Below, one piece after another: positions 9,492-51,469 of a stretch of 64,000 nucleotides of DNA. The stretch covers positions 141,545-205,544 of IMG/VR virus record IMGVR_UViG_3300048597_000634; one strand, 5' to 3'. The translations under genes were made by a program, and so were the position numbers. A model generated the notes under the pieces. That model saw only the letters and a list, made by a program, of their open reading frames with translations, made no database searches and had not been told where the DNA came from. How positions within the stretch are numbered: the first letter of the stretch is position 1; each line of letters begins with the position of its first letter.

Positions 9492-9752
9492 ATGGCCAGT
9501 TTATTAGAGCTGTATAGGCTGCAAAATACACTTACGGGCGAGCAAATTAAGAGTTTGTATGAGGGTGAGTTTGACACTAACGCTTATACAGATGCTGAGA
9601 AGATTAAGCTGGCTTCTACTTTAGTAGTAGTACCTGTTCCCGTTACATCTACTTCTCCTGGACAAGTAGGAAATATTGCAGTTGACACGGATTACATCTA
9701 TGTTTGTGTTGCGTCTAATACATGGAAGAGAAATGTATTAACTGATTGGTAG
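9492..9752 (+). CDS. small protein with a tail-fibre/virion-type C-terminal module
   Basis: PVTSTSPGQVGNIAVDTDYIYVCVASNTWKR resembles a module common in phage fibre proteins. One of very few credible plus-strand genes. Confidence 0.55.
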   Translation: MASLLELYRLQNTLTGEQIKSLYEGEFDTNAYTDAEKIKLASTLVVVPVPVTSTSPGQVGNIAVDTDYIYVCVASNTWKRNVLTDW

Positions 9753-9951
9753 TCTGTATCGCTGTGCATAGCTAGCCTCAACATACTGCCCTACGAGCCC
9801 TTTAGGGATGAACGAGAAAATCCATGCATAGGAGCACTTATAGATCAAAGGCATAAGAGATTCGATTTTTAAGTGGTGGGCTACATGTAAGCACATCAAG
9901 TCTCTATCAAAGACTAGCCTTCGTGGTTTAGTTCTTGCTTTGGTTAGCATA

Positions 9952-12222
9952 TTACTCGTAGTCCCTAAATGCTACACCAATAGGGAATCGTGGCAGACCA
10001 TCATCTGTATAACCATGGTGCTTAATGGTTATTAAGGTTTGTGATTCCGGCGGGTTGTCATAAACTTCCTGCTTCTGTGCTACCGTGCCTTGCATTTTAG
10101 CCTTAAACACCAGACCAATACACGTCGAACACTCAGCTATTAGGTCTTCAACGCCCCGCTGCCCTAACAAGAACCTCTCAAAGACGAACTCATTGGTATC
10201 GTACTCCTTAACCTTCAGTAGGTTGCTAGACCGCTGCCCTTGGTCGTAAGTGCCATTAAGGAGACGGATCATTACACCCTCGTAACCTTCGCTAACGTAG
10301 TGCATGTGAAGCTCCATCACTTCCTCCTTGTTGTCGCAGGTAGAGGTAGGTAGGGCTTTAACATGCTGCCAACTAATAGTGGATGTCAGGCGGCGCACCT
10401 CCAACTCCCGCTCTAGCTGCTTCTGATCGTTGACAATGTCGTAGACCCAGAACTCTAGCTGTAAGGATTGCTCTTGTTGTTTCTTAACAGCAGAGACAAT
10501 CTCTTGGAAGGTTAGCTCTCTAGTGAATATCTCCCCGTCGAGGATGACAGGCTGGGTGAGCTTCTCTTCTAGTTCCTTTTTGATGTGCCCTAGCGTAGTG
10601 TACTTTTTGCCGGTGCGGGACAGGAAAGTAACGGTCTTACCGTCGAACACAGCCAGGGCTCTACAATTGTGAATAACAACGCCGTTAGCGACGTAGTTAT
10701 GATTGTCTTCTACCTCTAGGTCGTACTTAGTGTATGGGGCAGAGCTACGCTTAGCTTTAGTTTTATGAAACTTACTCCAAGCGAACTCGTCTTTTGCGGC
10801 TTGCACGTAGTCTTCCGTAGGGAAGTAATATTTGTACTCTACTCCTTTACAATGGCACTTCCGTAAACTGTTAAGTAAATAAAGAGTGTCTTTAGTGTTG
10901 AACTGTAGGAATATTCCAGAGCAATTAGTGGTGTCGACACGTTTATCCCGTATTTCTGTAGGCGTGCAATGCCACTTTTTCTGAAAGTATTCGACAAACA
11001 CTTTTATCTGGTCGAGAGAGTGCTTATGTGTGGATATACTTAGCACCGGTGTGTTAGGGTTTCCGTTGTTAAAGCTTATACTTCCGTCATCTGCAATCCA
11101 TAGACTTAGAGCTTCTGGGCTCATGTATTTACACATGTTATCGTATGTGATGTGCTTCCTGTGCCCTAGCCGCTTACAGTGCCCTGTAAAGTAGATTAAC
11201 TCGATAGGAAAGTCTGTCTTACTTAATGCGACACTATCAAACCGATAGCCTTTAGACCCATAACCTGTTGTGTATTCGGTACACCTACCATCTAAGTTTA
11301 GAGTCTTAACCTTAAAATCGAATAGCTCTTTATTGGTATGACTAAAAGCTAATCTGTAACTGGTACCGCTACCTCTTTTTTCTATGTTCATTATGCTATC
11401 CCCCAGTAAGGTGCCAAAGACAAGAGACGTTCTATACTCGGAGAAGCAATTTACGTAGATTAAATCTTCCTTCTCATTAAGGTCGCGAGCTTCTTTCCAG
11501 CCTTGGTTGGTAAAGTATTTATGGTTGGCAGTTGTCTTCAATCGTGTACCTGTAGGCAGAGTAACATCTAACCAATCTTTGTACTTAGAGCTTCCGTTAT
11601 TAAACCAATTTGTTATGGGCTTGTACTCAAAGACCTTTTTGGCTTCGTTGTAAGAGAGCACTTCCACCTTCATTTTGGTCTCTACTATCTCTTCAATGCT
11701 TATTAGTCCTTTATTAGTAGAGACTAGAGTTTTACCGTAGACGCAGCCGTCCAATTTGGGCTGCACAAGGCAGCGGTACTTAACTTTATTCCACTTCACG
11801 GACTGGGCTAGCATTGGCTTCCGCATTCCGTTAGCGTCAGTGTTAAAGGTAGGTAGAGCGGCTTCTAAAGCATTCTTTAAATGCGAATAGAGAGTATTCT
11901 CGTAGGAGAAAGCTGACGCGGCTGTTCCTTCTACCCAAGAGATGCCTAGGTCTTCTAAAGACTTGTAGCCCTCGTCTTGCTTCTTCTTCCAGTCGCTGCG
12001 GGCTTCAGACTCGGCTTGTTGTTGGGGTGTCGTGGCGTTACTTCTGTTTAAGTTCTTACCTTCGCTAATGGTCTTGATGTTAACGAGGGGTTTGTCGGTG
12101 CCGTACTGTCCTGAGGTCTTGATGACCTGATACTCGTCGGAGCCGAGGACAGCTTCAGTCTCGATCTCCCAATAGGCTATAGATAGATTCTTTGTGCGCT
12201 TGTAAAGTATTGGTAGTTTCAT
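9952..12222 (-). CDS. ATP-dependent DNA ligase precursor (about 396 aa mature) containing an intein
   Basis: QPKLDG|C...HN|CRA, ILDGEIF, FWVYD, EGVMIR, LLKVK, and C-terminal PRFP. Confidence 0.92.
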   Translation of the reverse strand: MKLPILYKRTKNLSIAYWEIETEAVLGSDEYQVIKTSGQYGTDKPLVNIKTISEGKNLNRSNATTPQQQAESEARSDWKKKQDEGYKSLEDLGISWVEGTAASAFSYENTLYSHLKNALEAALPTFNTDANGMRKPMLAQSVKWNKVKYRCLVQPKLDGCVYGKTLVSTNKGLISIEEIVETKMKVEVLSYNEAKKVFEYKPITNWFNNGSSKYKDWLDVTLPTGTRLKTTANHKYFTNQGWKEARDLNEKEDLIYVNCFSEYRTSLVFGTLLGDSIMNIEKRGSGTSYRLAFSHTNKELFDFKVKTLNLDGRCTEYTTGYGSKGYRFDSVALSKTDFPIELIYFTGHCKRLGHRKHITYDNMCKYMSPEALSLWIADDGSISFNNGNPNTPVLSISTHKHSLDQIKVFVEYFQKKWHCTPTEIRDKRVDTTNCSGIFLQFNTKDTLYLLNSLRKCHCKGVEYKYYFPTEDYVQAAKDEFAWSKFHKTKAKRSSAPYTKYDLEVEDNHNYVANGVVIHNCRALAVFDGKTVTFLSRTGKKYTTLGHIKKELEEKLTQPVILDGEIFTRELTFQEIVSAVKKQQEQSLQLEFWVYDIVNDQKQLERELEVRRLTSTISWQHVKALPTSTCDNKEEVMELHMHYVSEGYEGVMIRLLNGTYDQGQRSSNLLKVKEYDTNEFVFERFLLGQRGVEDLIAECSTCIGLVFKAKMQGTVAQKQEVYDNPPESQTLITIKHHGYTDDGLPRFPIGVAFRDYE
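10666..11745 (-). mobile_element. intein (360 aa) with LAGLIDADG homing endonuclease
   Basis: Begins CVYGKT and has block B TTANHKY. LAGLIDADG-like motifs FGTLLGDS and LWIADDGS. Ends YDLEVEDNHNYVANGVVIHN, followed by Cys+1. Confidence 0.93.
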
Positions 12223-12553
12223 GAAGGCTGGTTAAGTATGTAATGGTTAAAGCTAGATGCTCTACTTCCTCTTTTGTCGGCTGACAGTTGTACAGTCTGA
12301 GTACGCCCTTGTAGAGTCTTATATCCGGCGGCAGCTTTAGTTTGGGCTTTTCTTTATCAAGGCTGTGGAACCACCGTAAAGTCTCTCCGAGGTCTACTAG
12401 GATACTAGAGGTAGGCATATAGTAGATGTCAATCAGGTCACCGTCTGGGTAGGTGAATGGGGTGCGTATACGGGTTAGAGGTCCGAAGACGCAGCACTTG
12501 TAGTCGGAACCCAATTCAGTCTGTATCTTGCTTGTAATCCTATCAAGTGCCAT
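12155..12553 (-). CDS. DUF1828-like protein
   Basis: IRTPFTYPDGDLIDIY...DLGETL motif. Confidence 0.55.
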   Translation of the reverse strand: MALDRITSKIQTELGSDYKCCVFGPLTRIRTPFTYPDGDLIDIYYMPTSSILVDLGETLRWFHSLDKEKPKLKLPPDIRLYKGVLRLYNCQPTKEEVEHLALTITYLTSLHETTNTLQAHKESIYSLLGDRD

Positions 12554-12593: not shown

Positions 12594-15537
12594 CTAGGAA
12601 CCTAGGACAGCTTCATGCTGTTGTTGTTGAAGTAGCTGGTACAAGTCGAATCTACATACGTCCTTGTGGAAGTTGAAGATAGAATTTCGGCTTAGATGCG
12701 ATTTGTGGTGTACATCTGGTCGACGCGCCTTAAGCTTTTTCAATGCGTCTAGAAGAACGATGATCTCAAGACGATCTTTTACTTTTGCGGCTTTGATAGT
12801 CATAACCGTTTGTTTGGTGATCATGGAAGTACTCTGAACTTGCTTTCTTTTAAGGCTCTAAGCGCATCTTCTGTAAATCGCTTAAACAGTCGATAAAGAT
12901 AGAGGTTCACCTTATTAAGGTACATGTCGGCCTTATTGAACCCGCTATAGTCCCAGCTGTTTTTGTTAAGCGCAAAGTACTCTACAGCGCACAACTTCTT
13001 TCTTAACCTATCAATATCTTTTAGTCTCAGGCGGTTGGGCTTTCTAATGTAAACCTTGGCTAGTTGTTTGGTGAGCATCAATAGTCTTTGTGTAGGAGGC
13101 GATGCCTCTGAATATATCGTAGATATCGCTTCTTGCTTCGTGAACACTTGGGCTGAGCATCATATTCCCGAAGAGCTTTGCTCTTATCTCACCAATCTCT
13201 GAGACAAAGGAGCAATACATTGTCTCCGGGTCCTCCCTGGCCTTTTTAGCTATATGTTTACTCAACATAGACTACTATCTCTCTAAGAGGGTTAGGGGCG
13301 CTTGAGTACTCGAAGGGACTGACTCTAGGCGGAGGGAGTTTGGAGAGGTAGTAGGTTCTTTTCTGCACTCGGCTTTTACCGTCTTCGTCAAGGTTTTCCC
13401 ACCGACTGTAAGAGTAAAGTAGGTAATACTTCTGAGGCTCAGGCTTCGTCATCTTTGTCCACTGTGTAGTCTGCTATACGGAATATCCCACGCTTGACTA
13501 CATCTTTAACCCAAGCTTTGAGTTCTTCCTGTATCTGCTTTTCGCCTGCTTCTTCCGGGTCGGTATCCGTTGGGTAGCAGAAATCCACACCGAAGTTGTA
13601 GGTGTACTTGTAGGGCTTAACAGGCTCTTTTGGGCGCTCTTCTATCTTCTCTGTTACGTCTTCCGGGCTCACCCCGTAGACCTCAGGAAGGACGGATAGA
13701 ACTTTAATGGTGCAGCCTTTGGATAGGTCTAGCTGCTGGTGTAACTCGTCGACTCGGGCTTGAGCTTCGGTTAGGTTAGCAGCTTCAAACTCTACTTCGA
13801 CGTGTTCCTCTCTTAGTCCGGTAACGGTATAGGTTGGCATGATATAAAAAGTCCGTAGATGGGTAGGTTGTAGTGCATCTCTCTTATGTCTTCGACTATG
13901 TCGAATATCTCAGATGTTAGGTCGAACCCAAATCTTGAGTAGGTGGCTTCTTTAAGCTCATTGATTGGGCTTTTAAGCACAGTGTCTCTCCAAGAGGTTC
14001 TGACTTTAATGTTACTTAGTAGCTTTTTAGTTAGCATTTTGTCCTCTTAGAGGTCTTTAAAGAGAGTTAGCGGAAAGAATTGGTCCCGAACATCTTCGAC
14101 GATGTCAAAGGTCTCTGGTGTTGAGATAGTTGTCTGTAGCGGTCTTTTATTAGCAACCCGGCGTCGTAAATCTTTTTACTTACACACAGGTCTGAGTGAA
14201 GGCGCCTAAACAGACAGCTATATATCGGTCTAATTGTGACCTTAGGAGTCTTGATGTCTAAACGTTTAGGACATGACGCTGCGGTTTGCTTAGTCAGCAT
14301 TCTTCATTAACCCCGTTAACAACCCAACAGTTATTGGTCTGTAGAACACCCAACTATGTCTGAAGTTTCTCTTGGATGACATGTCTATCGCCGGGCATCT
14401 TCTTTGCATTTTATCTTTAATGGTTAGGCGCACGGAAGTGTACTGGCGCAGTCCCCGGTACTCTTGGTAGACAAACCGGTCGCGCACTAACCTTTCTTTA
14501 GTTAACATTGTGTTAAAACCACCCCCTATATTTATCTTTGGTGATGACTAACGAGATGGTGTAGAGCATTTCATTGATAAGCGGTAGGTTATGTTCATGG
14601 AGCTTCACCCTAAACACGTTCTTAGAGCTTATCGCCGCCCTAAGGTTTCTTTGCAACCAACCAGTGTGGTTAATGACCCTTACTTTGCGGCCCTCAACGG
14701 TTTCTTTAGTTAACACTGTGTCCTCTTTTATTGCGGATGACCATGGATACTGCGTAGATCATGCGGTTAGTTGGCATTCTTCTATAAACGTTATTGCTGC
14801 TGACCGCCTCCCGTAGTTTGTAATTTACCTGTTTATCCTTCAACCTCTTCTGACCAAGGTTCTTCGTCAACATTTGTATAACCGTTATAAACATCTATAG
14901 CTTTAGTCAGGTCATCTCCTTGATATAGAGTGGTAGACCTCCGCTGATACCCTTCGGACTCTTCTACAAAATACCGACCATTGGCATCGTAGTGGAACGT
15001 AATGAGCTTATTATTTACACCAGTGGCGGCGGCGTATAGCCAGCGCCGGGTAGTGATGTAATCAAGGACTTGCTCGGGCTTAAGGTTGGTCATTTCCATT
15101 TGGTCAGATAATTGTTTAATAATCCGTCATTGTTTTGTAGAGTCCTACCTACTGAATGGTTAATGTCTGGTGGCGTCAAGTACTCATCGTACTCTATATC
15201 AATATCAAGCTCTAGGCTCTGACTAATGCTAGAAATAAGGTTGTATAGTGCTTGGTCTATGCTTCGTTGATGGTTAGCACGGCACGGCGCTTTACTTAAC
15301 ATGAGTGATTGTTGTTTTTAGACTTATTACATCTTAATCACTTCACCTTATTAGTCCACTATAAACATCCAAAATAAAACCTACTTCACTATCAAGCGAG
15401 TGGCTACTGCTGAGGATGCCATAGTGAGTATTACCCAAATGTAATGCGCGCTCCAATGTCTGGTATTTAACCCACATAACGTCGTCTATAGGGCGACGCA
15501 TAGACACTATGCTCCAGGTTGATCGTTTAGACAGCAT
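12594..15537 (-). other. M-[LIVF]-[TSN]-K small-ORF array, block 1 (about 10 members, plus a few unrelated small genes)
   Basis: Starts at 12824, 13147, 13268, 14037, 14300, 14508, 14716, 14873, 15302 and 15537 all read M/V-L/I/F-T/S-K. Confidence 0.75.
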
Positions 15538-16689: not shown

Positions 16690-16706
16690 GAAAGATGTTG
16701 GTCACT

Positions 16707-17267: not shown

Positions 17268-20200
17268 CTATGTTTTTAGTTGTTGACGTGCCGCTGTTAA
17301 GAGTATCGCGGTTTGCATAGCCCTAGTTATGTGCCTTAATGGTCTATCTACAATCCAACGGAGGTTATAATGCATACGCAACTCTTTATTGGCTATGGCA
17401 GTTAACTCTTCTTCGAGAGCAATCAGCTGCTTGCCTTGGTTGAGCGCCGCCATACTATTGGTTAATGTCTGTTTAGTGACCATAAAGTCCAGCTACCGGC
17501 ATTGCGACTCGTGTGCCCCGGGTTATGTGTCTAAAGGGCCTGCTTATAACCCAACGCAGGTCATACAGTGATAATCGGTCTTCAAACGCGATAGAAGGTA
17601 GTGACCTTTCTAATATTGTCGGTAACTTAGATGGTCTTATTTTGGTGTTAGCTACCGTGTTGGTTAATGAATGTTTGGTAATCATAGTGGTAGCTGGCTG
17701 TTGATAAATCCTTTAAGGCGCCAATGTATTCTACTCATATGTGAAAGTGGTTTCTCAACAGCCCAAATAACATTAAAGCATGCTATGAGCTCGTCATAAG
17801 GCATCTCTTTGGGGTATAAGACAAATACTGGGACTTTTAGTGGTTCTTTTAAGACTGCAGGAAGTTCCCGAAGCCGCACGATATTAGTTAAAGATTGTTT
17901 AGTGATCACGGTAAAAAGGCTAAGGTGGCGTGCCGGGTCGGGTTTTCCAATACCATGCAGAGAATTGTCAGCTCTATTGGGACTGTGTTATCTATCTTGT
18001 TAGCCAATAGGTCGGCTAAGTTTATTGGTCGTCCCGGCGGCTGGGTGTTAATTAAGCGCTGTTTGGTGACCATAGTTAGGAGTAGCGTTTCCTCCAAGCT
18101 ACGTCTTTAAGCGGCTTTACATTGAGTACGGCTCTTTGTGTATGCTTGATAACTCCTTCTACTTCCCACCAAGGATTATGGCTCAGTATAGGCATAGCGC
18201 TCTTTAACCACCCTTTAATGATAATTGGCACTCGTGGTTTTGTATTTAGTTTGGTAGCGTATACGCCGTACTGTTTAATGATCATTGTCTTGGGTGCTGG
18301 TTTAGTGCGTGTCTTGTGCTGTAACTGACCATTTGATGGGTCATAGTCCTTTTTATCACGGTGCGATGCACCACCATATAATAATCATAGGAATAACAGA
18401 TTAAGTTGATCTCAGGGTTTATTTGCGAGCGCAAGTCAAATATTACGCTCTTTGATCTTTTATGGTGTTGTTTTGTAAGCACTTCTCGTCTCCGACAATA
18501 CCAAGCAAATCTAACGTGTCTTCTATAGCAAACTCCAGCACCAAGAACTTACTGATTACGTCTCTCTTAGCGGCGCTTGTACGCTTTAAAGTTGTGGGGG
18601 AGGCGCCGCCTTACTTCGTCACATATATTGTCTTGCTTGTCTATCAGTTTGGCTAATGTCTGTTTGTTAATCATTTAACTTCAGTCTTATCCTAGGGCGT
18701 AAGCCCAACGCGTCTTCAATGCCTAACTCGATAGCCAGTAATGGTTCACTTATGTCCTGCTTAGCCAGCCCGATGGTGCCCATATATTCTTTGAGGGATT
18801 TGGCGTGGACTTGTGGGTTGGCAGTGTGCCACACAATATCTTCTTGCTTGTTTGTCAGCCTGGTTAGAGACCGTTTGGTAATCATATTCAGCTAAAGAAC
18901 TTAATCATTTGCGGTGACCGGTCTAAGCCTACAGCTATGGATAAACAGGGGTTAACCACACGCCGCTTGGTAAAGACTCTGATTTGGTGGTATTTGTTGA
19001 TGTAATCGGAGTCGTGAGTTTGTCTAACGCCGGCTAAGGCTTCTAACCCGCGGCGGAAGATGCAGCGCAGTTGGTCTTCTGGTTGGGGGCGGCGGTTATA
19101 AGTTGGTAGTTGATATTTGCTAATCATATCCCAGTCCATTTCTAATTGCTGTAGTGATGGTTCCGTATGGTCTATAGACTGACTGCTTAACCTTAAAGCT
19201 CAAATAAGAATAACTGGTTATCCTGCGGTTCCCAACCACATCCGGGTGTGGCAGGGTTTTTACTTCGTAAGTTAAATCAATGACTGGACCATATTTTGTG
19301 TTTGAAGGTAAATGACGTCTTTTAATCATATTCTTATGGTGACAGCCCTGGCTAATGACCAATAGAATGGTAGGATTTCTGCCTGTTTAGTAGGGTTGAA
19401 ATTCCTAATATGATACTTCAAGTAGTAGGTGGTGCTTTGGTCTATCTCTTGTGTTAGTAGTGGTTTAGTCAGCAAGGTTCGGCAGGGATATAGATATGTA
19501 AGCGCCTTCTATGCTGTATAGAGCGCCATAAAACTCATCGGGTGAGTGTGGTATATGAGCGATATTAGTTAGCCGTAGTTGATGGACAATGTTGTGGCGT
19601 AGCTCATAGGCTAACAATCGTCTTGGGTCGGCGGGTTGGTACGGAATATTTTTAACGCTGAGCATTGGTAGACCTGATGGTTTTGTCGGCTGCTAAATCT
19701 ACGCGTAAATACATCTTTCTGATGTCGTATAGAGTACCCTTGGTGGTGGCGCCGACTATTCTAATTTTATTAACGGCTGCTTGTAGCTTCTCGGTATCAA
19801 ACAATAGTAGCTGGGTGGTTTGTTTAGTCAGTCAGCATTAGCGTAAAAGCCTCATATATAGAGGGAAGAACCATTTACTATGCCTGTCGTTAATAGCTTT
19901 GATTAGTGGGGCGAATATTGCTCTGGATAAGGCATTAAACTCCTTAGTCCAGGCCTCCTTCCATAGATTATCAACACCATTAAGTTGAAGCCTACGCTAG
20001 CTTCGTCTGACTGTCTCTTTATTTTGGGGGTGCTTGTTTTGGTTAACATGGCTCCAATCCTTTGCTATTGCCTCAGCGTCTAACTGCCGGGCTTCTTTAT
20101 CTGTCATTGGGCGGCGCTTTAGTCGTCTCCTGATATACTCAAAGCGCCTTGGGCGTGCTTTATAGGTGGCGCCGATGTCTAAGGTGCGGGCTACGCCGTC

Positions 20201-37066: not shown

Positions 37067-37110
37067 ATAAATAACCCGGACTGGTTAGGCCCGGGCATTG
37101 CTGCTAACTA

Positions 37111-37752: not shown

Positions 37753-37774
37753 AGCTTATGTGTTGATAGACGAT

Positions 37775-41517: not shown

Positions 41518-41624
41518 AGTTTATTTCCTTAGCATATCTAAAAGCATTCTGTCCTCTAGCGCTTGTCTTAACCCTGTCTTTACTTTCATGTAGGCTTCGT
41601 AGGGGCTATAGCTATAGTTGGTGA

Positions 41625-42104
41625 CTAAAACTGATTCTTTTCTAAGGGTTCTACCCGCTCTTTGGCAGAGGTAGGTATGCTGTACAGCAAAAGTTGGTGT
41701 GTTTCTTTGGGCAGGGGAGTGTTGAGCACTCGCACCTTAATCACCTCGTCGTATTCGTGGGTCCAGTAATAGGTAACGGTCTTCGTTTCTGCTATCAGTA
41801 GGTCTTGGAACACCGGGGCTAGCACATCGTAATAGCTCAGCTCCGGCGACACTTTGATACTTTGGAGGATAGTTCTTAACCCGTATTGGATGTGTGCGAG
41901 GGGAGTAGCGAGCTCATCAATGTGCAAGGGCAGTTTGACGCTCTTTCGCTCTCCGGTGACTACCCTCTGGAAGAGATTGCGGAGCACATACTCCTTTGTT
42001 TCTCCGTAGGGTTTTGGGTAGCGAGTCTCACTTATTTCTAATGCTGCGAAGACTTGGTCGTAGACCTCTTTGTCCACTTGAAAATACTGGTTATCCATAT
42101 GCAA
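41625..42104 (-). CDS. hypothetical protein
   Basis: 159-aa ORF. Confidence 0.55.
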   Translation of the reverse strand: MHMDNQYFQVDKEVYDQVFAALEISETRYPKPYGETKEYVLRNLFQRVVTGERKSVKLPLHIDELATPLAHIQYGLRTILQSIKVSPELSYYDVLAPVFQDLLIAETKTVTYYWTHEYDEVIKVRVLNTPLPKETHQLLLYSIPTSAKERVEPLEKNQF

Positions 42105-42131
42105 CTAAATGGTGGAGAGTGGTCACTAGGC

Positions 42132-42545
42132 TTAGTATAATCGTAAGCGGCGTAGGTGCCGTAATCTTGTTTTCAAGGAGTCATTCCACTCTGCTTCTTC
42201 CTTGGCTCTTATCTTCTCTAGGTTGGCAGCTTTTAGCTTTGCTACGGTGGGTTGGAGGTAGTCTCGCAGTTGATCTAGCGTTTCCTCAATAAGACGATCT
42301 AAATCTGCATGCTCTCTTATCGCGTAGATGTTTCTTTCCTCTACGTGCTCTTTCAGCCCGGGGCTTTGCCAATAGATACTGAGCGTTCCCATGTAGTGGT
42401 CGACACTCAGTTTTAGAAAGGTTACGAGCTCATTTGGGCGGCAACATAGAGTGTCTGCAAGGTCGTCAATCACCATTTTTGCGCTCTTTACCAAGATGTC
42501 TTCGGTAAACGGCGCTATTAACGGAGTGTCTCTATGCATATGCAA
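42132..42545 (-). CDS. hypothetical protein, paralog of 30861-31292
   Basis: Colinear similarity over the full length. Confidence 0.7.
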   Translation of the reverse strand: MHMHRDTPLIAPFTEDILVKSAKMVIDDLADTLCCRPNELVTFLKLSVDHYMGTLSIYWQSPGLKEHVEERNIYAIREHADLDRLIEETLDQLRDYLQPTVAKLKAANLEKIRAKEEAEWNDSLKTRLRHLRRLRLY

Positions 42546-42600
42546 TTAGGAGGATGATCAGAGTAGCCAATAGAATAGCCCAAAAGGTATCTTTCATTGG

Positions 42601-43608
42601 TTAGTCCTTCTGCTTGAGCAGGAACGCGTTGCTGATGACTTTAAACGACAGAGTGTTGTCGAAGTTGCGGTACACGACCCCTTCCCGTTTAGTCTCTTTG
42701 TTGAGGACGCTCGGTCCATCTGCCAATTCGATGAGCTTCTTACGGTCTTGGGGTAACTCTACGTCAGTCTCTAACAGGGGTACCATCTCTAGCTCCAGCT
42801 TGTGACACCAATCCTGGAGGTAGTAGAGCTACTCCTTGACGAACTTGTCGATGTTGAAGACGGTGAAGGGACGGAAAGTGTGGGTACTCAGCTTATAAGG
42901 ATTACCTTGGATGCCGGGGCCGATTAGCTCGCCTTGGATAGCAATGTTAACCCCGTAGGCTGTAAGCTTCTCTCTGAGCTTGAACTTGTTAGCGACCTGC
43001 CAGAAGGTGTTAGTCTCCGTTTCTACTAGGTTCATGTTCCTAGAGCAGACACCGAACTCTCCGTTGTTGAAGAATACGGTCATTGAGGAGCCGTCAAGTT
43101 TTTCCGTGGTGTAGTAACGGGCTTCGAGGTAGTCTTGGTACTTGAGGTTTTGCACCCGTTCCTCATCGGTCTTGGTGATAAAGGAGGGGAAGTTACCCTT
43201 GCTGATACCTGCTAGCTGGGGCTTAACAGGGGGTTCGTAGAGGGTGACGTTGAGGTACTCTGAGACATCGTCACCTATAGCGTAGGTAGAAAGGTTGAAG
43301 CCTTTCTCTTCTACGGCGGCGATCGGCAACAATAATCCCTGAGATACCTGCCCGCGTAGCTTAACGGTGCGGAGACGGTTGCCGGGGATGTCGTTAAAGC
43401 TTTTAGGCTGGTCTCCTTTGGTTAGGAAAGGAGCGAGAGAGTGTGGTACCCAGGAGTCAATCTCAAAGTACACAGCGGAGTCTCCGACGGAGAACTCTCC
43501 TTTCTTAACCACCACTTGCCAGCCTTGGACAGTCGCTACTTCAATCAGGTCTGCTCCTTCTATGGGGTTAAGTTCAATGATAGTTTCTAGTCTTGCTAGC
43601 TTTCTCAT
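42601..43608 (-). CDS. Rnl2/DRB0094-family RNA ligase with in-frame TAG at 42829-42831
   Basis: MRKLA...IEGADLIE..., TEKLDGSS, QGELIGPGIQGN. After the TAG the same frame continues LYYLQDWC...VPLL...REGVVYR...SFKVISNAFLLK. Confidence 0.85.
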
Positions 43609-43612
43609 AGGT

Positions 43613-44161
43613 TTAATAATTGCGTTTAAGGACAGGGCGTTGTTTAAGTTCTTCGATCAGAGCGTAGTAATCGCTTAGTAGTTTACCAGTGGCGTCGTAG
43701 CCTACATCAAGAGCTCTATACTGTTCGAGACCAGAGTGCCCCCCGTGAAGATGGGCATAAAAGTGGATAGCGCCGTGGTGACACTCGTTCCAATAGTTGA
43801 TGGGGTAGTGGAACATTGTCACGAGAACCTTGTGGTCTCTTTCCCTCAGTTCTAAGTAGTCGTGGGTGCTGGCAAAGCACTCCATAAATTGTGGGTACTT
43901 GCAGTTTTTGTAGTCGTGGTTGCCCTTGATTAGAATCTTCTTTCCCTTTAGCTGTTGAAGAATCTCTACGGTGGGGCCAATACCTTTAAAGGAGACGTCT
44001 CCAAGGATGTAGATCAAGTCTTGGTCAGCAACGATGTCGTTCCACTCTTCGATCATCCTTCGGTCCATGTCGTCCACATCTTTGTAGTGACCCCGGACAT
44101 CGGGCGAGAACTTAAGGATATTCTTGTGCCCGAAGTGGAGGTCGGAGGTAATGTAAATCAT
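43613..44161 (-). CDS. calcineurin-like metallophosphoesterase
   Basis: SDLHFGH, LGDV, GNHD, HYP, HLH; likely start MIYITSD at 44161. Confidence 0.88.
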   Translation of the reverse strand: MIYITSDLHFGHKNILKFSPDVRGHYKDVDDMDRRMIEEWNDIVADQDLIYILGDVSFKGIGPTVEILQQLKGKKILIKGNHDYKNCKYPQFMECFASTHDYLELRERDHKVLVTMFHYPINYWNECHHGAIHFYAHLHGGHSGLEQYRALDVGYDATGKLLSDYYALIEELKQRPVLKRNY

Positions 44162-45367
44162 TGTTCGGTTTCTGTGGTAATGCGAGCTACTACTTCCGCC
44201 CTGTGGCAAATAACAAGACTGCTGCTGGGCTTAGTCCACTCAGAGCTGTTACTTACTCTTCGCAGGCAGGAATAGGTTTTAGTGTGGGCAGAGGCTTTAA
44301 CTCTATTCTTTATTCTCTGGTGAGGTATCAGCTCGCAGAGCATAGATTTTGTGATCATCGTGTTTCCTTAGTTAACGATAGATAGGTTCTTACAGCAGAC
44401 TTACTGCTGAGTCTACGAATTACTCTGCACCACTCTCTATAGAGGATAGGGTGAAAAACGATGTAGATATAGCTTCTGGCGTATTTGGGTGCAGACCAGC
44501 GCAGTGACATCATACTCTTAGTCCTGGTGTAAAGCTCATGTAGTTCGTCCTTTAGGCTATCGACTGTCATGCCTGCGGTCGCATCACCTATGTTGGCTAT
44601 TTTCTGTTTACTTAGCATTGAACAGTGTCCTCTCTAAGACGAACTCCAGGTCGTTGTAACATTTTGGGATGTTAGCTTTGTAATGTACATAACCCCCTTT
44701 GTGCTCTCTCTGGATAAAACCTACTCTACCGCTCAAGACACGTATTTGGTCTGCGATAGCTCTATTCCGTCTTGGATAGTACTTGGCTGACCTCTTACTT
44801 AGCATCCGATAAATACTCCGTATGATAGGTCATCGATTACTCCAAACTGTCGTGGTGGGTCGAGCTTAGAGTAGAACCAACCGTTACTAATGTCGCTCAA
44901 ATAACCCACTCTTATTCCTAATCTTAGGCACTCTTCATTAAAGGTTTCCGTATTCATTGAGAGTCTTTGAGTCTTCTCTTTAGTTAGCATTGTTTACTCT
45001 ACAATCTTTACCGCCAGCCTAATTGCTACGAAGCATCGGGGTGGTATTAGTGTGTATAGGTAGTTGCAGCGAGACCCTATAGATTGTGACCGTTTCAAGT
45101 ATCCTACGTTGCATCCTAAGCCCAACCCCATTTCATTGAGTGTTTGTTTGTTTATCTTTAAGTGACGGGTTCTCTTTTTAGTCAGCATAGCTTACTCACT
45201 GTCACTCTTATCACTGCAAAGCATTGGGGTGGTGTTATATCGTAAGTGAAAAAGCCTGGGGTTTTTGAAGGCTCTAAATACCCTACACTGCACCCTAATG
45301 CGAACTGTAGCTCCTTGTGTCTTTCCTTATCTATCTTTAGGGGATGAGTTTTCTCTTTAGTCAGCAT
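44158..45367 (-). other. M-[LIVF]-[TSN]-K small-ORF array, block 5 (6 members)
   Basis: Starts at 44358, 44618, 44805, 44990, 45188 and 45367; four share G.VG[YF]...Y...P..F/Y. Confidence 0.8.
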
Positions 45368-46310
45368 GGTGGTCTAAGTAGTAAGAGACTAACTTAGCAT
45401 CCCAGAACTCTCTATCAGGTTCCGCAGGCAGGACCGACTTGAGTTCTCGCAGTTCATCAAGCTCATCCGCTAGCAATCCTTGCAGGTAGGGATAGGTATG
45501 CTTACCCTCTTTAATCTCCCTAAGAAACTTGGCCTCCTTCAAAGGCATCTCCAGATGTCCTGTGGTGAGCAGTTCTTTAATCTGATAGACGCAGCGGAAG
45601 GCATGGCTGACAGCTTTAAAGTCAACGCCACGGTTTTCCATAGCATCGACGCTGCGGGCTCCGTACTTGTCGATCCACAGCGAGAGGGAGTGGGCTAAGT
45701 TGCCTATCTTCTGATTAAGTTGGTAGTGCTTCTCTAGCACGCGGATGTAGTAGACAGTGTTACCCACCTTGTCTTGCTGCTCGACCTGGCGGATGTGCTC
45801 CGAAACCTCGAACTTTTCAAAGACTTCTCCCACCTTAGTATCGCTGGGATGAGTCTTTAACCAATCTCGGAAGCGGATTACTTCTCCGAGGCGGCTACCC
45901 TTCAGTCCATATTTAGCAGCCTGCTGGGTGGCGTAGCCGATGAACGGTTTAACGTTGCTGCTGAGCAGCTTACTGCGATGCTCGATGATATCTAACCACA
46001 CCTCGTTGTGCTCCAACCACATCTCTTTAGGAGAGAACAGAAGGTCGATGGCGTAGATCTGTCCGGTCAGGGCGTCCTTAATGAACCGGCGTAGCTCTTT
46101 GTATTGGTAGTCGATGTCGTCCTTGGTGTTGCGGCGGCGGTCGCTGGCTGCCTTTGTGTTGTAGATGATGGTTTCTTGGTCAATGCCTAGGATGACATCT
46201 TCTACCGGAGCTTTGTAGATTCCTTTGTAGTCCTTGTCAGAGTTGGGGGTGTCGGTGCCGTAGAGGTGGGAACCGTGGAGGCATAGAAGAATGGTGTTGA
46301 GTTTTTTCAT
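45357..46310 (-). CDS. pol-beta superfamily nucleotidyltransferase (phage type)
   Basis: HGSHLYGTDTPNSDKDYKGIY (GS...DxD), KAVSHAFR, L.EIKEGK. Confidence 0.82.
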   Translation of the reverse strand: MKKLNTILLCLHGSHLYGTDTPNSDKDYKGIYKAPVEDVILGIDQETIIYNTKAASDRRRNTKDDIDYQYKELRRFIKDALTGQIYAIDLLFSPKEMWLEHNEVWLDIIEHRSKLLSSNVKPFIGYATQQAAKYGLKGSRLGEVIRFRDWLKTHPSDTKVGEVFEKFEVSEHIRQVEQQDKVGNTVYYIRVLEKHYQLNQKIGNLAHSLSLWIDKYGARSVDAMENRGVDFKAVSHAFRCVYQIKELLTTGHLEMPLKEAKFLREIKEGKHTYPYLQGLLADELDELRELKSVLPAEPDREFWDAKLVSYYLDHHAD

Positions 46311-48009
46311 TGCTTATTGGTGACTTTAATAGCGTCTTTAATGGCTTGCGCTAACGGTGGCACTACATATGCGTAGACTGGGGCTTTGTTGTATCTCAAA
46401 GATGTCTCTCTTGCTCCTAGAAGATGAGTTTCTATCCAGAACATGGAATCATGGAGCTTGCTGAGACTTCTCTCAGTGTATGAATTTGTGTGCTGCTTGG
46501 TTAGCATTAGGACCTCTTTTTGACTCTCTGCCAAGCTCTAATAGCGAAGCCTACAGCGGCATAACACTTAGGGCTACCAATGCAACCGACTCTGGCCCTT
46601 GTTTTGTTTAATTCGCCGTCAACATAGTAAGCCCAGCAAACTGCTGGTTTTGGGTCTACTAGGCTTTGAATAGCGTGGCTCTTTTTAAGCATCAGAACTG
46701 GTACATGGTCGTTAGACGGTTAACTAAGTAATCGTAGACTTTATCAAGCTTAGAGCCTTGATCGTAAATGACATTTACCAGGTTTGTGGTGGTCTCTGGA
46801 TACAACTTAACAGTCAGTTTGGCGTCTAACTTGTGCGCTACTCCTCTACAGCGTATCTTAACGTTGGTGCAGCTCTTACTTTGAAATTCAACACTAAAGT
46901 TTAAACCACCAGACTCTTTAAGTTGCTCCTCTAGAAATACTGTAGGGTGCAGCCTTTCACTGTTATAAGAGAACTCTGGGTACTTTGCTTGTTGCGTTTC
47001 AGAGTCTATCACCACCATAAAGAGATCTGTGATTTGTTTACACATCAACTTTGTGATATGGGTCTCTAACACTTTATAAAAGTGTGATAACGTTTCTTTA
47101 TAACTTTGTAAGTACAGTTCTTTAGCTTGTTTGTGGTTGTTGACGAAAGTCATTAGTTCGATAAGTTCGTGTTCAATCTGCATTGTTATTGCACTCCTTT
47201 CATGTATTTGATCATAAAGTCATTGATAGCATAGGCTACCGCTTCAAGATGTCTGGGGGTTTTGTAGAAGAGTGAATCTCTTATTTTTACAAGTTGTTTG
47301 TCAAGACGCTTAACTGAAGGTGAAGGTCTGTTGCAGCTTAAAGTGACATTAGTCTTCCTTAACATTAAATAATCCTATTATGTTGGGTAATGGCTTTGTG
47401 TACGCTGTTCTCTACTATTGAGTAAATTAAGGGCTTTAGGCAGCGGTAGTAGCCAGGAGCCGGTGGTGTCATCCTTAAGAAAGGGACCTGCACCCACTCT
47501 GCGTGGGTAATGTGTGGAGGTCCCTTTCTACTTAGCCTAGCTTGATTCTTAGTTAACATCCTGGTTCTCTGTCCTCTTAGGGCTTTCGGGTTTTACAATG
47601 GCGGCAAACCCTGCGAATAGAAAGAATATGAACTTGCCTGCCGATAACCAGCGCACGAAGTTCACGGTAAAACCGCAGTAGTCTAGAAAGCATGTCTCTA
47701 CCTTCTTGCGGATGTCTTCTGCTTCAAGGTAGAGGGGTCTGCTCACGCTGCTTTTGGTTAGCATCATTAAAGCTCTTTTAGAGGACTCATGTAATGTCCA
47801 GTGGACCACTCTTTTAGATTAAAGTAAGCTTTCAAAGTTCTTTTAATAGCTTTCTCTATCTGAACATATCTATTCATCTCTCTATAAGGGATAGACCTCT
47901 TAATGTCTATCGTCTTTAAGGTGTTAAACCAATTCTGTCGGTATTCATACCTTAAATCGTAGTTTGGAATTGCCCTTGTAACTCTTGCTAGGTCTTTCTT
48001 GGTTAGCAC
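46307..48009 (-). other. M-[LIVF]-[TSN]-K small-ORF array, block 6
   Basis: Starts near 46507, 46692, 47365, 47559, 47764 and 48009. Confidence 0.7.
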
Positions 48010-48290
48010 CGCTCGGGCCTCCCTATAAGACTTAGCTCTATGTTTTCTCCAAAGAACTCCATAGGCTTCCAGCGGTTCTCATCCCAAATAAAGTACATCG
48101 TCTTGGTGTGGTTCTGTAGAATAACGGCCACCCTTAGGATGTAGCGTGCTGTTTGCTTTTCACGGTTGGCTCTTTTCTCTGCCAGTGTTACTACACCTGT
48201 GTGGAGAGTGTTCTTAGTCTTGTTAAAGACATGGACTAAGGAGCCTACTTCTATCTCATCGGGCCATTCCTCGAATACGTCGCCGGTGTA
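48003..48290 (-). pseudogene. 5'-truncated ORF whose start is replaced by the omegaRNA remnant
   Basis: Open frame YTGDVFEEWPDE...RPERC* has no start before an in-frame TAA inside the remnant. Confidence 0.5.
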
Positions 48291-48416
48291 CTCGGGGGCA
48301 CTGAGAAAGCTTAACGCTTAGGGAGATGGAGCCGCTATCTTTGTTGGAGCAATCCTGCATAGGTAAGTTCTGTCAATGAACTAAGAATCCTTCGCCTTTA
48401 GGCGAGGGAGTGTCAA
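48288..48416 (+). ncRNA. orphan IS200/IS605 right end / omegaRNA-like scaffold without tnpB
   Basis: Colinear with the 3' end of the element at 50214-50361; ends AAGAATCCTTCGCCTTTAGGCGAGGGAGTGTCAA. Confidence 0.7.
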
Positions 48417-48592
48417 TGCTGAATGAGTCCTTCTTTTAATAGGGCAGCCTTAGAGGCAGAGTCCATCTTTCTGTTAATGTTCTCCGTGGCCACTAAAACT
48501 GATGTTATTGCTGGACCAATCTCTTTTTGCAGTCCTATTCTTACTAAGATACGGACCGTTCACAAAACCTGTAGAAAAACGAGGTCTTGTTT

Positions 48593-49009
48593 TTAGATTG
48601 GATTAACCACTCTAGGGCGCAACGGCTGAGCCCCTATCAACTCGGACATTACGTCGTTGCTGAATACTTTTAGGCAGCAATTTAATGCCCCGTTAACGTC
48701 TGCGTTAAGCAACACACCAGTGGCAGTCTTAAACAACCCACGCTTAACACGACGACCTACATAGGACTTATGCTTCTTGACAGGTTCTAGGTCATAAGCA
48801 GAGCATTTGCTGGTGTAGCTTTCCTCTGTCTCTATTACCTTGATACCTACAAGCGCCGCCTTATATGTGATTTGGTCTATCAGTTTACGGTGGGGAATTT
48901 GAGTAAACTGCTGGTTGTTACGCTTACCAATGTTAATCTCTTGTTTCCACAAGCTGTTGTAGCCCACTACAAGCGTCGTTACTAGGTTTTCGACACAGTA
49001 GTCGATTAC
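48593..49009 (-). pseudogene. tnpB: C-terminal fragment of outer TnpB
   Basis: GYN..WKQ.INIGKRNNQQF..IP...EESYTSKCS...GRRVKRGLF...NADVNGALN; the central RuvC-I region is missing. Confidence 0.8.
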
Positions 49010-50361
49010 CTAAGAATTGGGTTTAAAGCCTAGCCCTTCAGGGCTACTTTTATCTGCGTCTTTATGTGATAAGATGAGAGGATGTTAGTAAGAGAAGCCA
49101 AGCTATTGAATGGAGCGCAGGGGCAATATATCGCCCTTGATGAAGCCATTCGCACCGCACAGTTCATTCGGAACAAGTGCGTTAAATATTGGATGGACAA
49201 CACAAGTGTGGGTAAAGCAACTCTGTATGTCCACTCTAAAGACCTAGCTAAAGAGTTTGAGTTTGCTAAAAAGCTTAACTCTACTGCTCGACAAGCTAGT
49301 GCTGAACGCGCTTGGACTTCTATCTCTAACTTTTATAGCCGTTGCCGCAAGGGTGAAAAGAAGAAAGGCTACCCTCAGTTTAAGAAGCATTGTCGCTCTG
49401 TGGAGTACAAGCAGTCAGGGTGGAAGCTATCAGGTGATTGTATGCAAATCACATTCACTGATGGATTTAACGCAGGGACTTTCTCTATATTCTGTAATGC
49501 AGAGACAAGGGAAGACTTGCATACACTAAAGATTAACAGGGTACGTGTAGTCTGTCGGGCTGATGGCTACTATGCCCAGTTTCTATTCGATGCCGACCGC
49601 AAGGAACAAGGAGTGTATACAGGTAACGTTATTGGATTGGACTTAGGGTTGAAATACTTCTACAAAGACCAAAACGATAACGCTGTTGTTTATCCCCAGT
49701 ATCTACGGAAAGCAGAGAAGCGTCTTAAGCGACAACAGCGGCGGTTAAGTAGGAAGTTTAAGAAAGGGCTTAAGCCCCAATCTAATAACTACCACAAGCA
49801 AAGAAAACGACTAGGTAAAACCCATCTTAAAGTCCAACGCCAACGTAAAGACTGGAGCATTAAGCAAGCTCGGTGCGTGGTAATGTCTAACGACATTGTG
49901 GTGTACGAAGACTTAAAGATAGGGAACATGGTTAAGAATCATTCCTTGGCTAAGTCAATCTCCGATGCTAGTTGGTATCAATTCACTCAATGGTTAGACT
50001 ACTACGGCAAGATTTGGGACAAGGTAGTTGTATCGGTAAATCCCGCATACACTAGCCAAGATTGTCCCAATTGTGGTCACAGAGTCAAAAAGACATTAAG
50101 TACCAGGACACATTCTTGTCCCAGTTGTGGATTTGAAGCCTGTCGCGATACTGTGGCGGCAATGAACATCCTTAAAAAGGGCATGAAGTTGTTAGGTATT
50201 GAGTGGCAAAACAGTACGCAAGGGCATTGCGAAACTGGGGAGAAATCCCGAACGACTGAGGAGATAATCGCCTCTGCTATAGATAGGCAACTTGAAATAG
50301 TAAGTGATGTCGATGAATCAGTAACAAGAATCCCCGCCCTAAAGGGCGAGGAGCATGTCAA
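49010..50361 (+). mobile_element. IS200/IS605-family (IS1341/IS891-like) tnpB-only element
   Basis: Preceded by TTAC (49006-49009); left hairpin TAGCCCTTCAGGGCTA; right hairpin followed by terminal TCAA. Confidence 0.8.
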
Positions 50362-50386
50362 GCTTCCAGTCTTTGTGTGCGGCTAA
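49082..50386 (+). CDS. tnpB: RNA-guided endonuclease TnpB (catalytic motifs intact)
   Basis: GLDLG (RuvC-I), YEDL (RuvC-II), CPNC..CPSC zinc finger, RDTVAA (RuvC-III). Confidence 0.93.
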   Translation: MLVREAKLLNGAQGQYIALDEAIRTAQFIRNKCVKYWMDNTSVGKATLYVHSKDLAKEFEFAKKLNSTARQASAERAWTSISNFYSRCRKGEKKKGYPQFKKHCRSVEYKQSGWKLSGDCMQITFTDGFNAGTFSIFCNAETREDLHTLKINRVRVVCRADGYYAQFLFDADRKEQGVYTGNVIGLDLGLKYFYKDQNDNAVVYPQYLRKAEKRLKRQQRRLSRKFKKGLKPQSNNYHKQRKRLGKTHLKVQRQRKDWSIKQARCVVMSNDIVVYEDLKIGNMVKNHSLAKSISDASWYQFTQWLDYYGKIWDKVVVSVNPAYTSQDCPNCGHRVKKTLSTRTHSCPSCGFEACRDTVAAMNILKKGMKLLGIEWQNSTQGHCETGEKSRTTEEIIASAIDRQLEIVSDVDESVTRIPALKGEEHVKLPVFVCG

Positions 50387-50662
50387 ATAACCTTTCCAAG
50401 TCTGAGCAACACGCTTAACTATCTGTTTGGACACCTTTGTAGGCAAGTCCAAATATGCCTCTGTCGCCTTCAGTAGGTGATAAAGGTCATAGAATCCAAT
50501 GTATCCGCCAGACTCAAAGAACTTCTGTCTGATGTGGTAATTGGCTAAGTTGTATAAGTTCTTTGCCCTCCACGATAAATCGTCCACTGTGGAGAAATAG
50601 GCACTTGATAGCTTAATGTTTGTTCGCTCGACTTGTCTCATGGATTTACGCTGTGCAACCAT
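50362..50662 (-). pseudogene. tnpB: N-terminal fragment of outer TnpB
   Basis: AKNLYNLANYHIRQ.F...LP.KVSKQ...W. Confidence 0.8.
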
Positions 50663-50777
50663 TACTACTAGATTCTACAACTTTCTACAGATTTATGCCA
50701 ACAGTGACCAACCCTTAGGTTGTTGGCTTTAAGAAGTCCAGGATAGGCTCTGAGGCTAGACTCTGCTCTTTGCTTGT

Positions 50778-51469
50778 TCATAAGTTAGTCACTATTTGTT
50801 TACTAAGACTTTTCCCGGCGGCTATGCCCATACGCTGGCTAATCCAACAAACTTTGTTTGTGTAACCTATGCTAGTAGTCTTAGTTGTTTGTCTATAGCG
50901 TGTGATAGCCTGACTTATTTCTGCATTAATTAAGATAGTTAGCCTGTGATTCTTACAGATAAAGCCGTTCTCCGCCATTATATACGCCTTCAAGCTATTC
51001 TTAGCGTGCTGCTTGTTCATATAGTCCTAAATCTGATATTACCGTAGCTGTGATTAGGTTCGAAGCACGATCATATAATCTATAAACATCAAACCGAAGC
51101 CAAAGTGTGTGTTCTTTGTACAGTCCTCGATTAGGTAATATAGCTCTTGTGCTTACCGCACTGAGATTAAATCTGACTTGAGTCTTAACTACATTCTGAC
51201 TAGAACAAACGTTGGTTACTGGCTTTTTGAAGGACATCCTATTAGAAATGACGCTGGTCTTAGTTTTAGTTATCACCACTCCTCCGTTTTAGCGTGGTGC
51301 TTATGGTGTTATAAACAGAATGAAATTGGTTGAGAATTTGCAGTCTTAAAGAACACAACGGCAGACAGTATACAGAGCAACCCTTCGATTGTAACTCTCT
51401 AACTTGTACAGTTATAAGTGACTTGTATGATTTGCTGCGAGCTCCTGCGGCATTAATTTTGGTAATCAT
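50778..51469 (-). other. M-[LIVF]-[TSN]-K small-ORF array, block 7
   Basis: MITKINA (51469), VITKTK (51276) and MNKQHA (51020). Confidence 0.65.

Follow-up and report, generated by a model that had tools for sequence, protein, structure and literature searches.

What holds the first four residues of a protein constant while almost everything behind them changes? The question is raised by 64 small open reading frames (ORFs) on the minus strand of the final 64 kb of the IMG/VR contig IMGVR_UViG_3300048597_000634 (205,544 bp), a stretch that is called the window below and whose positions are used throughout. Between 9738 and 51469, these ORFs stand in tandem arrays and begin with Met-Leu-Thr-Lys or a close variant of it, here called the tag; the 12 nt that encode it follow the pattern ATG-YTR-ACY-AAA, here called the module. 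In the explanation that we tentatively favour, while giving it somewhat less than even credence, the module would serve as a junction at which translation stops and restarts in whatever frame it arrives, within arrays of accessory genes that are translationally coupled and evolve fast, and Met-Leu-Thr-Lys would largely be its read-out.

Arrays of orphan genes with a common start

With gene models drawn up by simple ORF rules, 57 ORFs carry the strict tag M-[LIV]-[TSN]-K, 50 of them starting with ATG and seven with GTG or TTG, the latter occupying what seemed to be gaps in the arrays. Seven more have a relaxed tag (MLAK twice, MLYK, MLKK, MLRK, MIIK and MLLK once each). Together, they form 16 blocks (Table 1) and span 48-91 aa, with a median of 67 aa and a standard deviation of 9.8. 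An earlier note on this DNA had reported about 60 small ORFs with the tag M-[LIVF]-[TSN]-K, some ten near variants and at least seven head-to-tail blocks, the largest with about 20 ORFs at 17.3-21.9 kb. The census bears out their number and, with a largest block of 19 ORFs, their layout; at position 2 Leu, Ile and Val all occur but no member has Phe, and the near variants exist but come to seven. Among ORFs of at least 45 aa that start with ATG, M[LIVF][TSN]K is found 51 times on the minus strand and once on the plus strand. Third-order Markov shuffles yield a mean of 0.2 such starts and the frequency of the tripeptide inside proteins predicts about 0.7 among 190 starts, so that chance or codon bias can be rejected as the source of the motif. 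Since two double-tag pattern scans of IMG/VR matched the source contig only at 10.7-50.5 kb of the window and nowhere in its first 141 kb, the arrays are regional.

Past residue 4, BLASTP gathers the proteins into only about nine paralog groups of two to four members, with identities of 19-40% in global and up to 47% in local (BLASTP) alignments, and the remaining bodies are unrelated. The median isoelectric point (pI) is 9.8, compared with 6.0-6.3 for other genes, and the near-complete divergence of basic bodies that had been described is thus upheld. The same holds for the statement that no described family fits: none of 56 members matches Pfam, PHROG or NCBIfam at E <= 0.01, profile searches add only a member from a related contig (see below) and, judged by these searches, the tag ORFs are orphans. 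The composition of the bodies lies between that of the phage's ordinary proteins and that of random translation, with 8.3% Arg (4.8% in large genes, 8.7% in random translation) and 4.3% Glu (7.3% and 3.6%, respectively). Their 'basic' character is therefore in part that of weakly constrained sequence which is young or turning over fast.

It is very improbable that the tag ORFs are not genes at all, be it as chance or filler frames, as fragments of longer genes under an alternative genetic code or as a DNA tandem repeat. Such a view could draw on the composition of the bodies, which resembles random translation (r = 0.89) slightly more than the larger proteins of the phage (r = 0.83), and on a codon-usage signal that is weaker than in large genes. 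Yet, the strand is covered end to end by 64 open frames of about 67 codons, 62 of which score best in their annotated frame (a test that is biased by stop codons), and gene calling by the Joint Genome Institute predicts equivalents of the tag ORFs in the related contig. Paralog pairs share 0.52, 0.55 and 0.36 of their nucleotides at codon positions 1, 2 and 3, respectively, and more than half of their identical residues are encoded by different codons: the bodies show protein-level conservation on top of saturated synonymous sites. From one tag ORF of the window to the next the frame changes, and TAA, TGA and TAG all serve as stops, so that neither read-through of one stop type nor stop-codon reassignment can fuse them, and one long gene split by recoded stops is rejected for the window on these grounds. 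We thus take the tag ORFs for real, very fast-evolving protein-coding cistrons of about 67 codons. A DNA tandem repeat behind the arrays was not detected either, as Tandem Repeats Finder gives a single microrepeat in 9-52 kb. This is an 11-bp unit, TTGGCACATGC, repeated 3.1 times at 27340-27373 inside the tag ORF 27319-27522.

The N-terminal 13 residues are polar and basic and are predicted to be disordered, and an AlphaFold2 model of the window family, weak at a predicted local distance difference test (pLDDT) score of 62, places a disordered N-terminal arm on an alpha-beta-beta-alpha body. A Foldseek search with this low-confidence model returned nothing significant, its top matches being winged-helix structures at E > 0.5 that may serve as a lead only. 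Two further ideas about the bodies were rejected. A single family with a hidden common fold is at odds with an hhalign comparison of the window family with the SDBU family (see below), in which residues 1-6 alone align, and with AlphaFold2 models that differ from one another; a reservoir for frame switching is at odds with the density of out-of-frame stops in the bodies, which is not reduced.

Out-of-frame stops in the tag codons

When the module is read in the two frames that the tag does not use, it contains stop codons in both. The +1 stop is TRA at nt 5-7, or TGA at nt 2-4 (ATGA) in tags with Ile at position 2, and the +2 stop is TAA at nt 9-11. The codons of the tag are chosen accordingly: all six Leu codons occur, with YTR in 35 of 39 cases; Thr is ACY in 37 of 39 (P = 2e-4 against the phage's own codon usage) and Ser is AGY in nine of ten (P = 0.004 against the same), while Lys is AAA in 42 of 51. 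The earlier note had listed Ser as both AGT and TCT and had read the synonymous variation of the tag as favouring a constraint at the peptide level. The variation is real, but its bias towards out-of-frame stops and AAA takes away the force of that argument, and Ser is far from evenly split.

The bias was quantified by holding the tag peptides fixed and resampling synonymous codons in 106 unique tags from the window and the related contig. All four quantities are in excess (P <= 0.002 each): +1 stops (86 observed, 73-74 expected), +2 stops (63, 36-37 expected), both stops together (54, 24 expected) and AAA (86, 49-63 expected). The excess extends to stops that no upstream ORF uses (+2, 36 versus 20.5; +1, 59 versus 50.1), and tags that have no out-of-frame ORF upstream contain both stops 17 times against 7.0 expected; non-tag genes of the phage show a weak +2 effect only. 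Moreover, where position 3 is Gly, Asp or Ala, it is repeatedly paired with CTA or TTA, which recreates TAG in the +1 frame. Given that the synonymous sites of the bodies are saturated, the codon bias of the tag reflects selection rather than shared descent, and the bias at fixed amino acids, along with the replacements at position 3, places part of the constraint on the nucleotides. Synonymous sites of the tag are thus under selection for out-of-frame stops.

The layout of the junctions matches the content of the module. In 81% of tag ORFs, the start overlaps the end of the upstream ORF or lies within 5 nt of it, compared with 38% of other genes, and overlaps of the classes -1, -4, -7 and -11 all fall within the module, -11 being the commonest. 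No enrichment of Shine-Dalgarno (SD) sequences was found at any gene class across the whole window, where duplex energies with the anti-SD are no better than at random positions, and neither conserved nucleotides upstream of the tags nor shared intergenic 8-mers were detected. No convincing strong terminators or sigma-70-like promoters were seen inside the arrays, and their absence fits polycistronic transcription. TTGACT occurs in a few tags, but the tag as a -35-like promoter element was rejected, as sigma-70-like sites are fewer than in shuffles. Nor does it mark an unusually unstructured start region, with an average of -4.9 kcal/mol that is no better than the -3.5 kcal/mol of other genes.

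From this arrangement, we infer termination-reinitiation coupling. A ribosome arriving in either of the other two frames would terminate within 11 nt of the next AUG and, once terminated, could reinitiate there without a Shine-Dalgarno sequence. Each cistron would thereby be insulated from changes in its neighbour, and an array built in this way could tolerate fast sequence turnover, indels and the gain or loss of cassettes. Such a junction fits the rapid turnover of the arrays as well as a truncated copy (18567-18674), a doubled tag (31262-31519) and the interleaving of paralogs.

Translationally coupled overlapping cistrons are familiar from ATGA and TAATG overlaps, termination-reinitiation and 70S scanning. 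The tag ORFs resemble them in having the upstream stop in or next to the downstream start, little or no SD sequence and long co-oriented, operon-like runs. However, an ordinary coupled pair requires no stop beyond the one in use, whereas the module supplies stops in both other frames, even where they go unused, occurs 64 times over and turns up again in unrelated array families of phages. The enrichment also recalls the hidden-stop or 'ambush' idea, according to which off-frame stops are selected because they end mistranslation early, a weak trend across whole genes. In the tag, the synonymous choice is likewise enriched for off-frame stops, but the effect is very strong and confined to the first 11 nt, and the bodies have no special enrichment.

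Related phages, independent arrays and the gene setting

A relative of the phage is available from the same metagenome in the contig IMGVR_UViG_3300048597_000133 (97.5 kb; loci L019, L118 and L126), whose core proteins are 54-72% identical to those of the window. It carries about 45 ORFs that start with M[LIV]xK, with a median length of 67 aa and a median pI of 9.7, and a BLASTP comparison of the tag ORFs of L118 with those of the window gave no match at E < 1e-3. Only one subfamily, recognisable by 'VGYL...PP..F', can be aligned by eye across both phages; beyond its member in the related contig, its profile found nothing in 5.8 billion clustered proteins or 1.84 billion representatives. The related phage thus keeps the tag on bodies that are no longer recognisable, meaning that the start is retained while the bodies turn over almost completely.

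This turnover bears on two explanations that invoke the history of the DNA. The tag could be a relic of tandem duplication, i.e. the N-terminus of one ancestral gene that has not yet diverged, as the tandem layout, the uniform length and the local paralog groups would suggest. We consider this quite improbable, because the synonymous sites of paralogs are near saturation and most bodies cannot be aligned, so that an unconstrained 12-mer would have decayed, and because the tag persists in two phages whose core proteins have diverged to the above extent and which share no bodies. Alternatively, the module could be a cassette boundary at the DNA level, offering microhomology for duplicating, deleting and exchanging cistrons within and between phages, and be kept since arrays that shuffle cleanly persist. 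Here, the conservation of nucleotides down to synonymous sites, the interleaved and local paralogs, the truncated member and the doubled tag, which suggest unequal exchange, and the complete change of content between related phages speak in favour. Still, homologous exchange would have very little to work with in 12 degenerate bases, variation peaks at precisely the three wobble positions, selection for evolvability is of second order and weak, and the specific stop-codon content is not predicted, all of which leaves this explanation improbable.

Two independent cases were found via a triple-tag DNA pattern and are therefore ascertained by the tag. One is SDBU01000002.1 (618,894 bp), a contig of the deep-sea Loki's Castle sediment metagenome assembly KR126 (PMC6401483), to which SDBV01012474.1 (L072) is related. 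Together, the two hold more than 100 tandem ORFs that start with MLT[KRS]L[KN][IM] and have a median length of 68 aa; in SDBU01000002.1, they occupy at least two regions, 24.8-45.7 kb and 137.6-150.5 kb (L064, L097 and L117). These proteins are rich in a four-residue periodicity of the 'QVW' type, and AlphaFold2 predicts a single long helix from an alignment of 103 sequences (pLDDT 86). In the above profile-profile comparison with the window family, residues 1-6 only are aligned. The SDBU ORFs have GGAGG upstream, and TAG|ATG in frame makes up about half of their junctions; TAG may thus be read through or recoded in this candidate virus. Their tags contain 73 +2 stops against 17 expected and both stops 61 times against 12, which independently replicates the stop bias. 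Another case, L151 (IMGVR_UViG_3300017960_000507, 35982-48865), consists of about 25 tandem zinc-ribbon-like ORFs with four cysteines (MLSKxxCxxC...CPYxLEHLMETQ) and the same overlapping start architecture, and here a replacement of Lys by Glu retains the stop (AGT GAA, giving TGA).

Elsewhere, the pattern yielded little. A triple-tag scan of one genome per species (185,579 bacterial and archaeal genomes) returned only tandem-repeat or chance matches, most matches in metagenomes and IMG/VR were likewise tandem DNA repeats or chance, and literature searches for the motif or for such arrays produced nothing relevant. The feature is real and strongly non-random, and apparently undescribed.

In the window, which has a GC content of 45% and nearly all of its genes on the minus strand, the recognisable genes are of the accessory or early type (Table 1). 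The RNA-repair-like set consists of a P-loop kinase-like protein of 429 aa, a homologue of the Thg1-like tRNA-His guanylyltransferase, an RNA ligase with an OB fold, a metallophosphoesterase and an RlaP-like nucleotidyltransferase. ThyX, PhoH, a MazG-like protein, KilA-N, Bro-N and ANT proteins as well as HNH and GIY-YIG endonucleases are also encoded. The related contig has an orthologue of the DNA ligase without the intein (L118 4632-5822, 396 aa), with 63-64% identity in the flanks.

Table 1. Tag ORF arrays and larger genes of the window, in order of position
Feature	Position	Strand	Remarks
rIIA-like ATPase	6052-8520		about 27% identity to the counterpart in Microcystis phage LMM01
Single tag ORF (MLTK)	9738-9950	minus	70 aa; immediately downstream of the DNA ligase gene with the intein
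ATP-dependent DNA ligase and intein with LAGLIDADG homing endonuclease	9952-12222	minus	756 aa
Block of 3 tag ORFs	12594-13268	minus	12594-12824 MITK, 12821-13078 MLTK, 13044-13268 MLSK; overlaps of 4 and 35 nt
Block of 7 tag ORFs	13813-15537	minus	13813-14037, 14067-14300, 14290-14508, 14513-14716 (GTG), 14706-14873, 15090-15302, 15343-15537
Largest block, 19 tag ORFs	17268-21910	minus	low coordinates: 17268, 17473, 17682 (GTG), 17906, 18076 (MIIK), 18282 (GTG), 18667, 18888, 19326 (TTG), 19903, 20224, 20433, 20578 (TTG), 20753, 20928, 21091, 21338, 21525, 21710; paralog trio 17268/17473/17682
Truncated MINK ORF	18567-18674	minus	35 aa; inside the largest block
Single tag ORF (MLSK)	25108-25296	minus	62 aa; preceded by terminator-like hairpin 25335-25313
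Block of 7 tag ORFs	26907-28217	minus	26907 MITK, 27161 MITK, 27319 MLYK, 27500 MITK, 27703 MLAK, 27860 MLTK, 28011 MLTK; alternating paralog pairs 27500/28011, 27319/27703, 27161/27860
Block of 2 tag ORFs	30083-30470	minus	30083-30268 MLTK, 30246-30470 MITK
Block of 4 tag ORFs	31262-32093	minus	31262-31519, 31513-31704, 31706-31888, 31878-32093; the first has a second, internal MLTK at residue 18 (doubled tag)
Single relaxed tag ORF (MLAK)	33804-34037	minus	77 aa
Pair of paralogous tag ORFs	35714-36083	minus	35714-35908 MLNK, 35883-36083 MLSK
Block of 2 tag ORFs	38632-39056	minus	38632-38862 MLTK, 38898-39056 MLTK
RNA-repair-like gene set	39058-46310	minus	between tag arrays
Block of 6 tag ORFs	44158-45367	minus	44158 MITK, 44355 MLSK, 44608 MLSK, 44799, 44994, 45182 MLTK; the last four belong to the 'VGYL...PP..F' subfamily, common to the related phage contig
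Block of 2 tag ORFs	46307-46692	minus	46307-46507 MLTK, 46507-46692 MLKK; adjoins the RlaP-like nucleotidyltransferase gene
Block of 4 tag ORFs	47186-48009	minus	47186-47365 MLRK, 47365-47559 MLTK, 47549-47764 MLTK, 47767-48009 MLTK (GTG)
Doubtful member (MLLK)	49244-49390	minus	48 aa; antisense within the plus-strand TnpB gene 49082-50386; probably spurious
Block of 2 tag ORFs	51001-51469	minus	51001-51276 MITK (GTG), 51266-51469 MITK

A DUF6745 protein (25% identity, E = 1e-21) is encoded next to tag arrays in the window phage (25353-26423), in its relative (L126 8491-9561) and in the SDBU contig (L097 7589-8509), and no other sizeable gene is common to the three. Small tandem paralogs without the tag exist as well, namely two 'MTQPT...' ORFs in the window (32472-32693 and 32735-32944) and four 'MATLE/MATID...' ORFs of 70-74 aa in the SDBU contig (L097 8601-9605). 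Three group I introns on the minus strand (4057-4284, 4732-4988 and 5152-5392; 65-77 bits, above the Rfam gathering threshold) sit where only short ORF pieces occur (3476-5823), which probably represent one gene with three introns.

A clue to the host comes from nested IS200/IS605-type elements at 48593-50662. There, a plus-strand TnpB gene (49082-50386) encoding 434 aa is inserted into a minus-strand TnpB gene. The N-terminal part of the interrupted gene (50339-50662) has 94% identity to an intact TnpB of 409 aa in the related contig, and its C-terminal part lies at 48593-48967. The inserted TnpB has named relatives at 75-80% identity in cyanobacteria alone (Limnoraphis, Microcoleus, Nostoc, Planktothrix and others), and its matches in phages are cyanophages throughout. 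The host is thus probably a cyanobacterium, as far as one mobile gene can tell, and the phage a jumbo cyanophage of about 205 kb. No isolated phage that is close at the DNA level was found, and for three of five proteins searched, relatives from isolated phages were absent or only remote, at about 25-33% identity.

Junction, peptide handle or both

Several observations weigh against a junction as the whole explanation. The invariant Lys and the preference for AAA do not follow from it, other coupled genes of this phage manage without the module, and the length of about 67 aa that is common to three unrelated body types is left unexplained. Information along the tag has a period of three, with its minima at the wobble positions, ACC, which yields no +2 stop, makes up 15 of the 39 Thr codons, the +2 stop is absent in 41% of tags and 10% have neither stop. 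In addition, SDBU junctions are largely in frame, so that their out-of-frame stops have no obvious user and are enriched all the same. Lastly, openers with both stops (NTR-ANT-AAN, n = 46) still favour Thr (C in 33), Lys (R in 44) and Leu (Y in 41). This residual preference suggests an added constraint at the level of the peptide, the tRNA or early elongation, and a peptide-level component in the constraint on the tag is likely.

In its full form, this component would be a peptide handle: Met-Leu-Thr-Lys on a flexible basic N-terminal arm would be recognised by one partner and mark an effector library for packaging and injection, docking or timed proteolysis. The latter variant would find a loose resemblance in N-terminal recognition motifs of ClpX and in ClpX/ClpS degradation signals, which make proteins unstable in a protease-dependent manner. 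Besides the residue preferences within the dual-stop pattern, the handle would account for a Leu that is encoded by six codons, a Thr encoded by ACC as well as ACT, and a Lys that does not vary. It would also explain why the tag is retained with GTG and TTG starts, in the related phage and on different predicted folds (alpha-beta-beta-alpha, long helix and zinc ribbon), and the predicted disorder of the N-terminal arm would suit it. What it leaves unexplained is the synonymous bias towards out-of-frame stops, unused ones included, and towards AAA. Moreover, the replacements at position 3 are chemically dissimilar and preserve nucleotides instead, the change from Lys to Glu in L151 keeps the stop, and just four residues are conserved, with no cleavage motif after them. 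The arrays also have rIIA, ligase and RNA-repair genes as their neighbours, not head genes, and at least 60 different cargo species would be unprecedented. Taken together, a handle alone is a possible but rather doubtful explanation. The earlier note had proposed a common handle on a diversified effector library; many small basic proteins of highly diverse sequence do open with one and the same start, but this start is not a purely peptide-level tag, and a handle on an effector library is no more than a possibility.

The closest precedent for such a handle is found in phage T4, whose capsid targeting sequence of about ten residues ends at a cleavage motif of the prohead protease (Leu/Ile-x-Glu). 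The internal proteins of T4, which counteract restriction, are diverse and have only a capsid targeting sequence in common (PMC3012670). As in the T4 IPI-III/polymorphic IP locus, the tag ORFs are small, basic and diverse, lie side by side and have only a short N-terminal sequence in common. In contrast to the T4 sequence, the tag comprises four residues, positions 5-20 contain neither a conserved Glu nor a cleavage motif, and the tag is under nucleotide-level selection for out-of-frame stops. The tag ORFs further differ in number (64 members instead of a handful) and in lying among early or accessory genes, and none of the 56 members searched in PHROG, Pfam and NCBIfam is similar to known internal proteins.

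Libraries of precursors of ribosomally synthesised and post-translationally modified peptides (RiPPs), e.g. the prochlorosins, combine a conserved leader of tens of residues with a short hypervariable core and a single processing enzyme. One conserved N-terminal piece on many diversified peptides and a cyanobacterial setting are shared with the tag ORFs. However, the conserved part of the latter is four residues long, their bodies are 60-aa sequences that look like those of folded proteins, and no RiPP maturation enzyme family was found among the 30 larger neighbouring proteins scanned. Instead, the neighbours of the arrays are ligases, a nucleotidyltransferase, a phosphoesterase, KilA-N/Bro-N proteins and homing endonucleases.

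Junction and handle could also be united in a dual-purpose start. Here, a frame-insulating stop-stop-start junction would double as a Met-Leu-Thr-Lys handle for one conserved machinery (packaging, docking or proteolysis). Libraries of 60 to more than 100 small proteins of near-random sequence could then be maintained and quickly replaced in very large phages of separate lineages, as counter-defence effectors that are injected or act early. We regard this extended version as unlikely.

As to the function of the proteins, the setting recalls the hyperplastic or early regions of large phages, such as the early ORFs of T4, the host-takeover module of SPO1 and the pre-early genes of T5, where dozens of small, fast-evolving genes lie between replication and repair genes. 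To our knowledge, genes of such regions have neither a common start nor a fixed length, unlike the tag ORFs. From position and evolutionary rate, our guess is that the tag proteins are early host-interaction or counter-defence proteins. For the time being, the arrays are best regarded as a new form of the translationally coupled arrays of small genes in large phages, distinguished by a reused 12-nt start that is selected at both the nucleotide and the amino-acid level.

Whether junction or handle, a motif that looks like protein carries strong selection at synonymous sites, and annotation needs adjusting to it; reading ORFs from ATG only, for instance, misses the seven non-ATG members. Should the tag act as a peptide, it would be a new targeting or stability signal marking the largest effector library yet seen in a phage. 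If, on the other hand, the favoured junction is real, 12 bases would constitute a compact and reusable device that ends translation in any frame and restarts it, with possible use as a tool for polycistronic constructs. In a genome with no reliance on Shine-Dalgarno sequences, mini-genes could then evolve independently of one another within long arrays, and the device would provide a mechanism for the upkeep and renewal of extensive orphan-gene repertoires in large phages.

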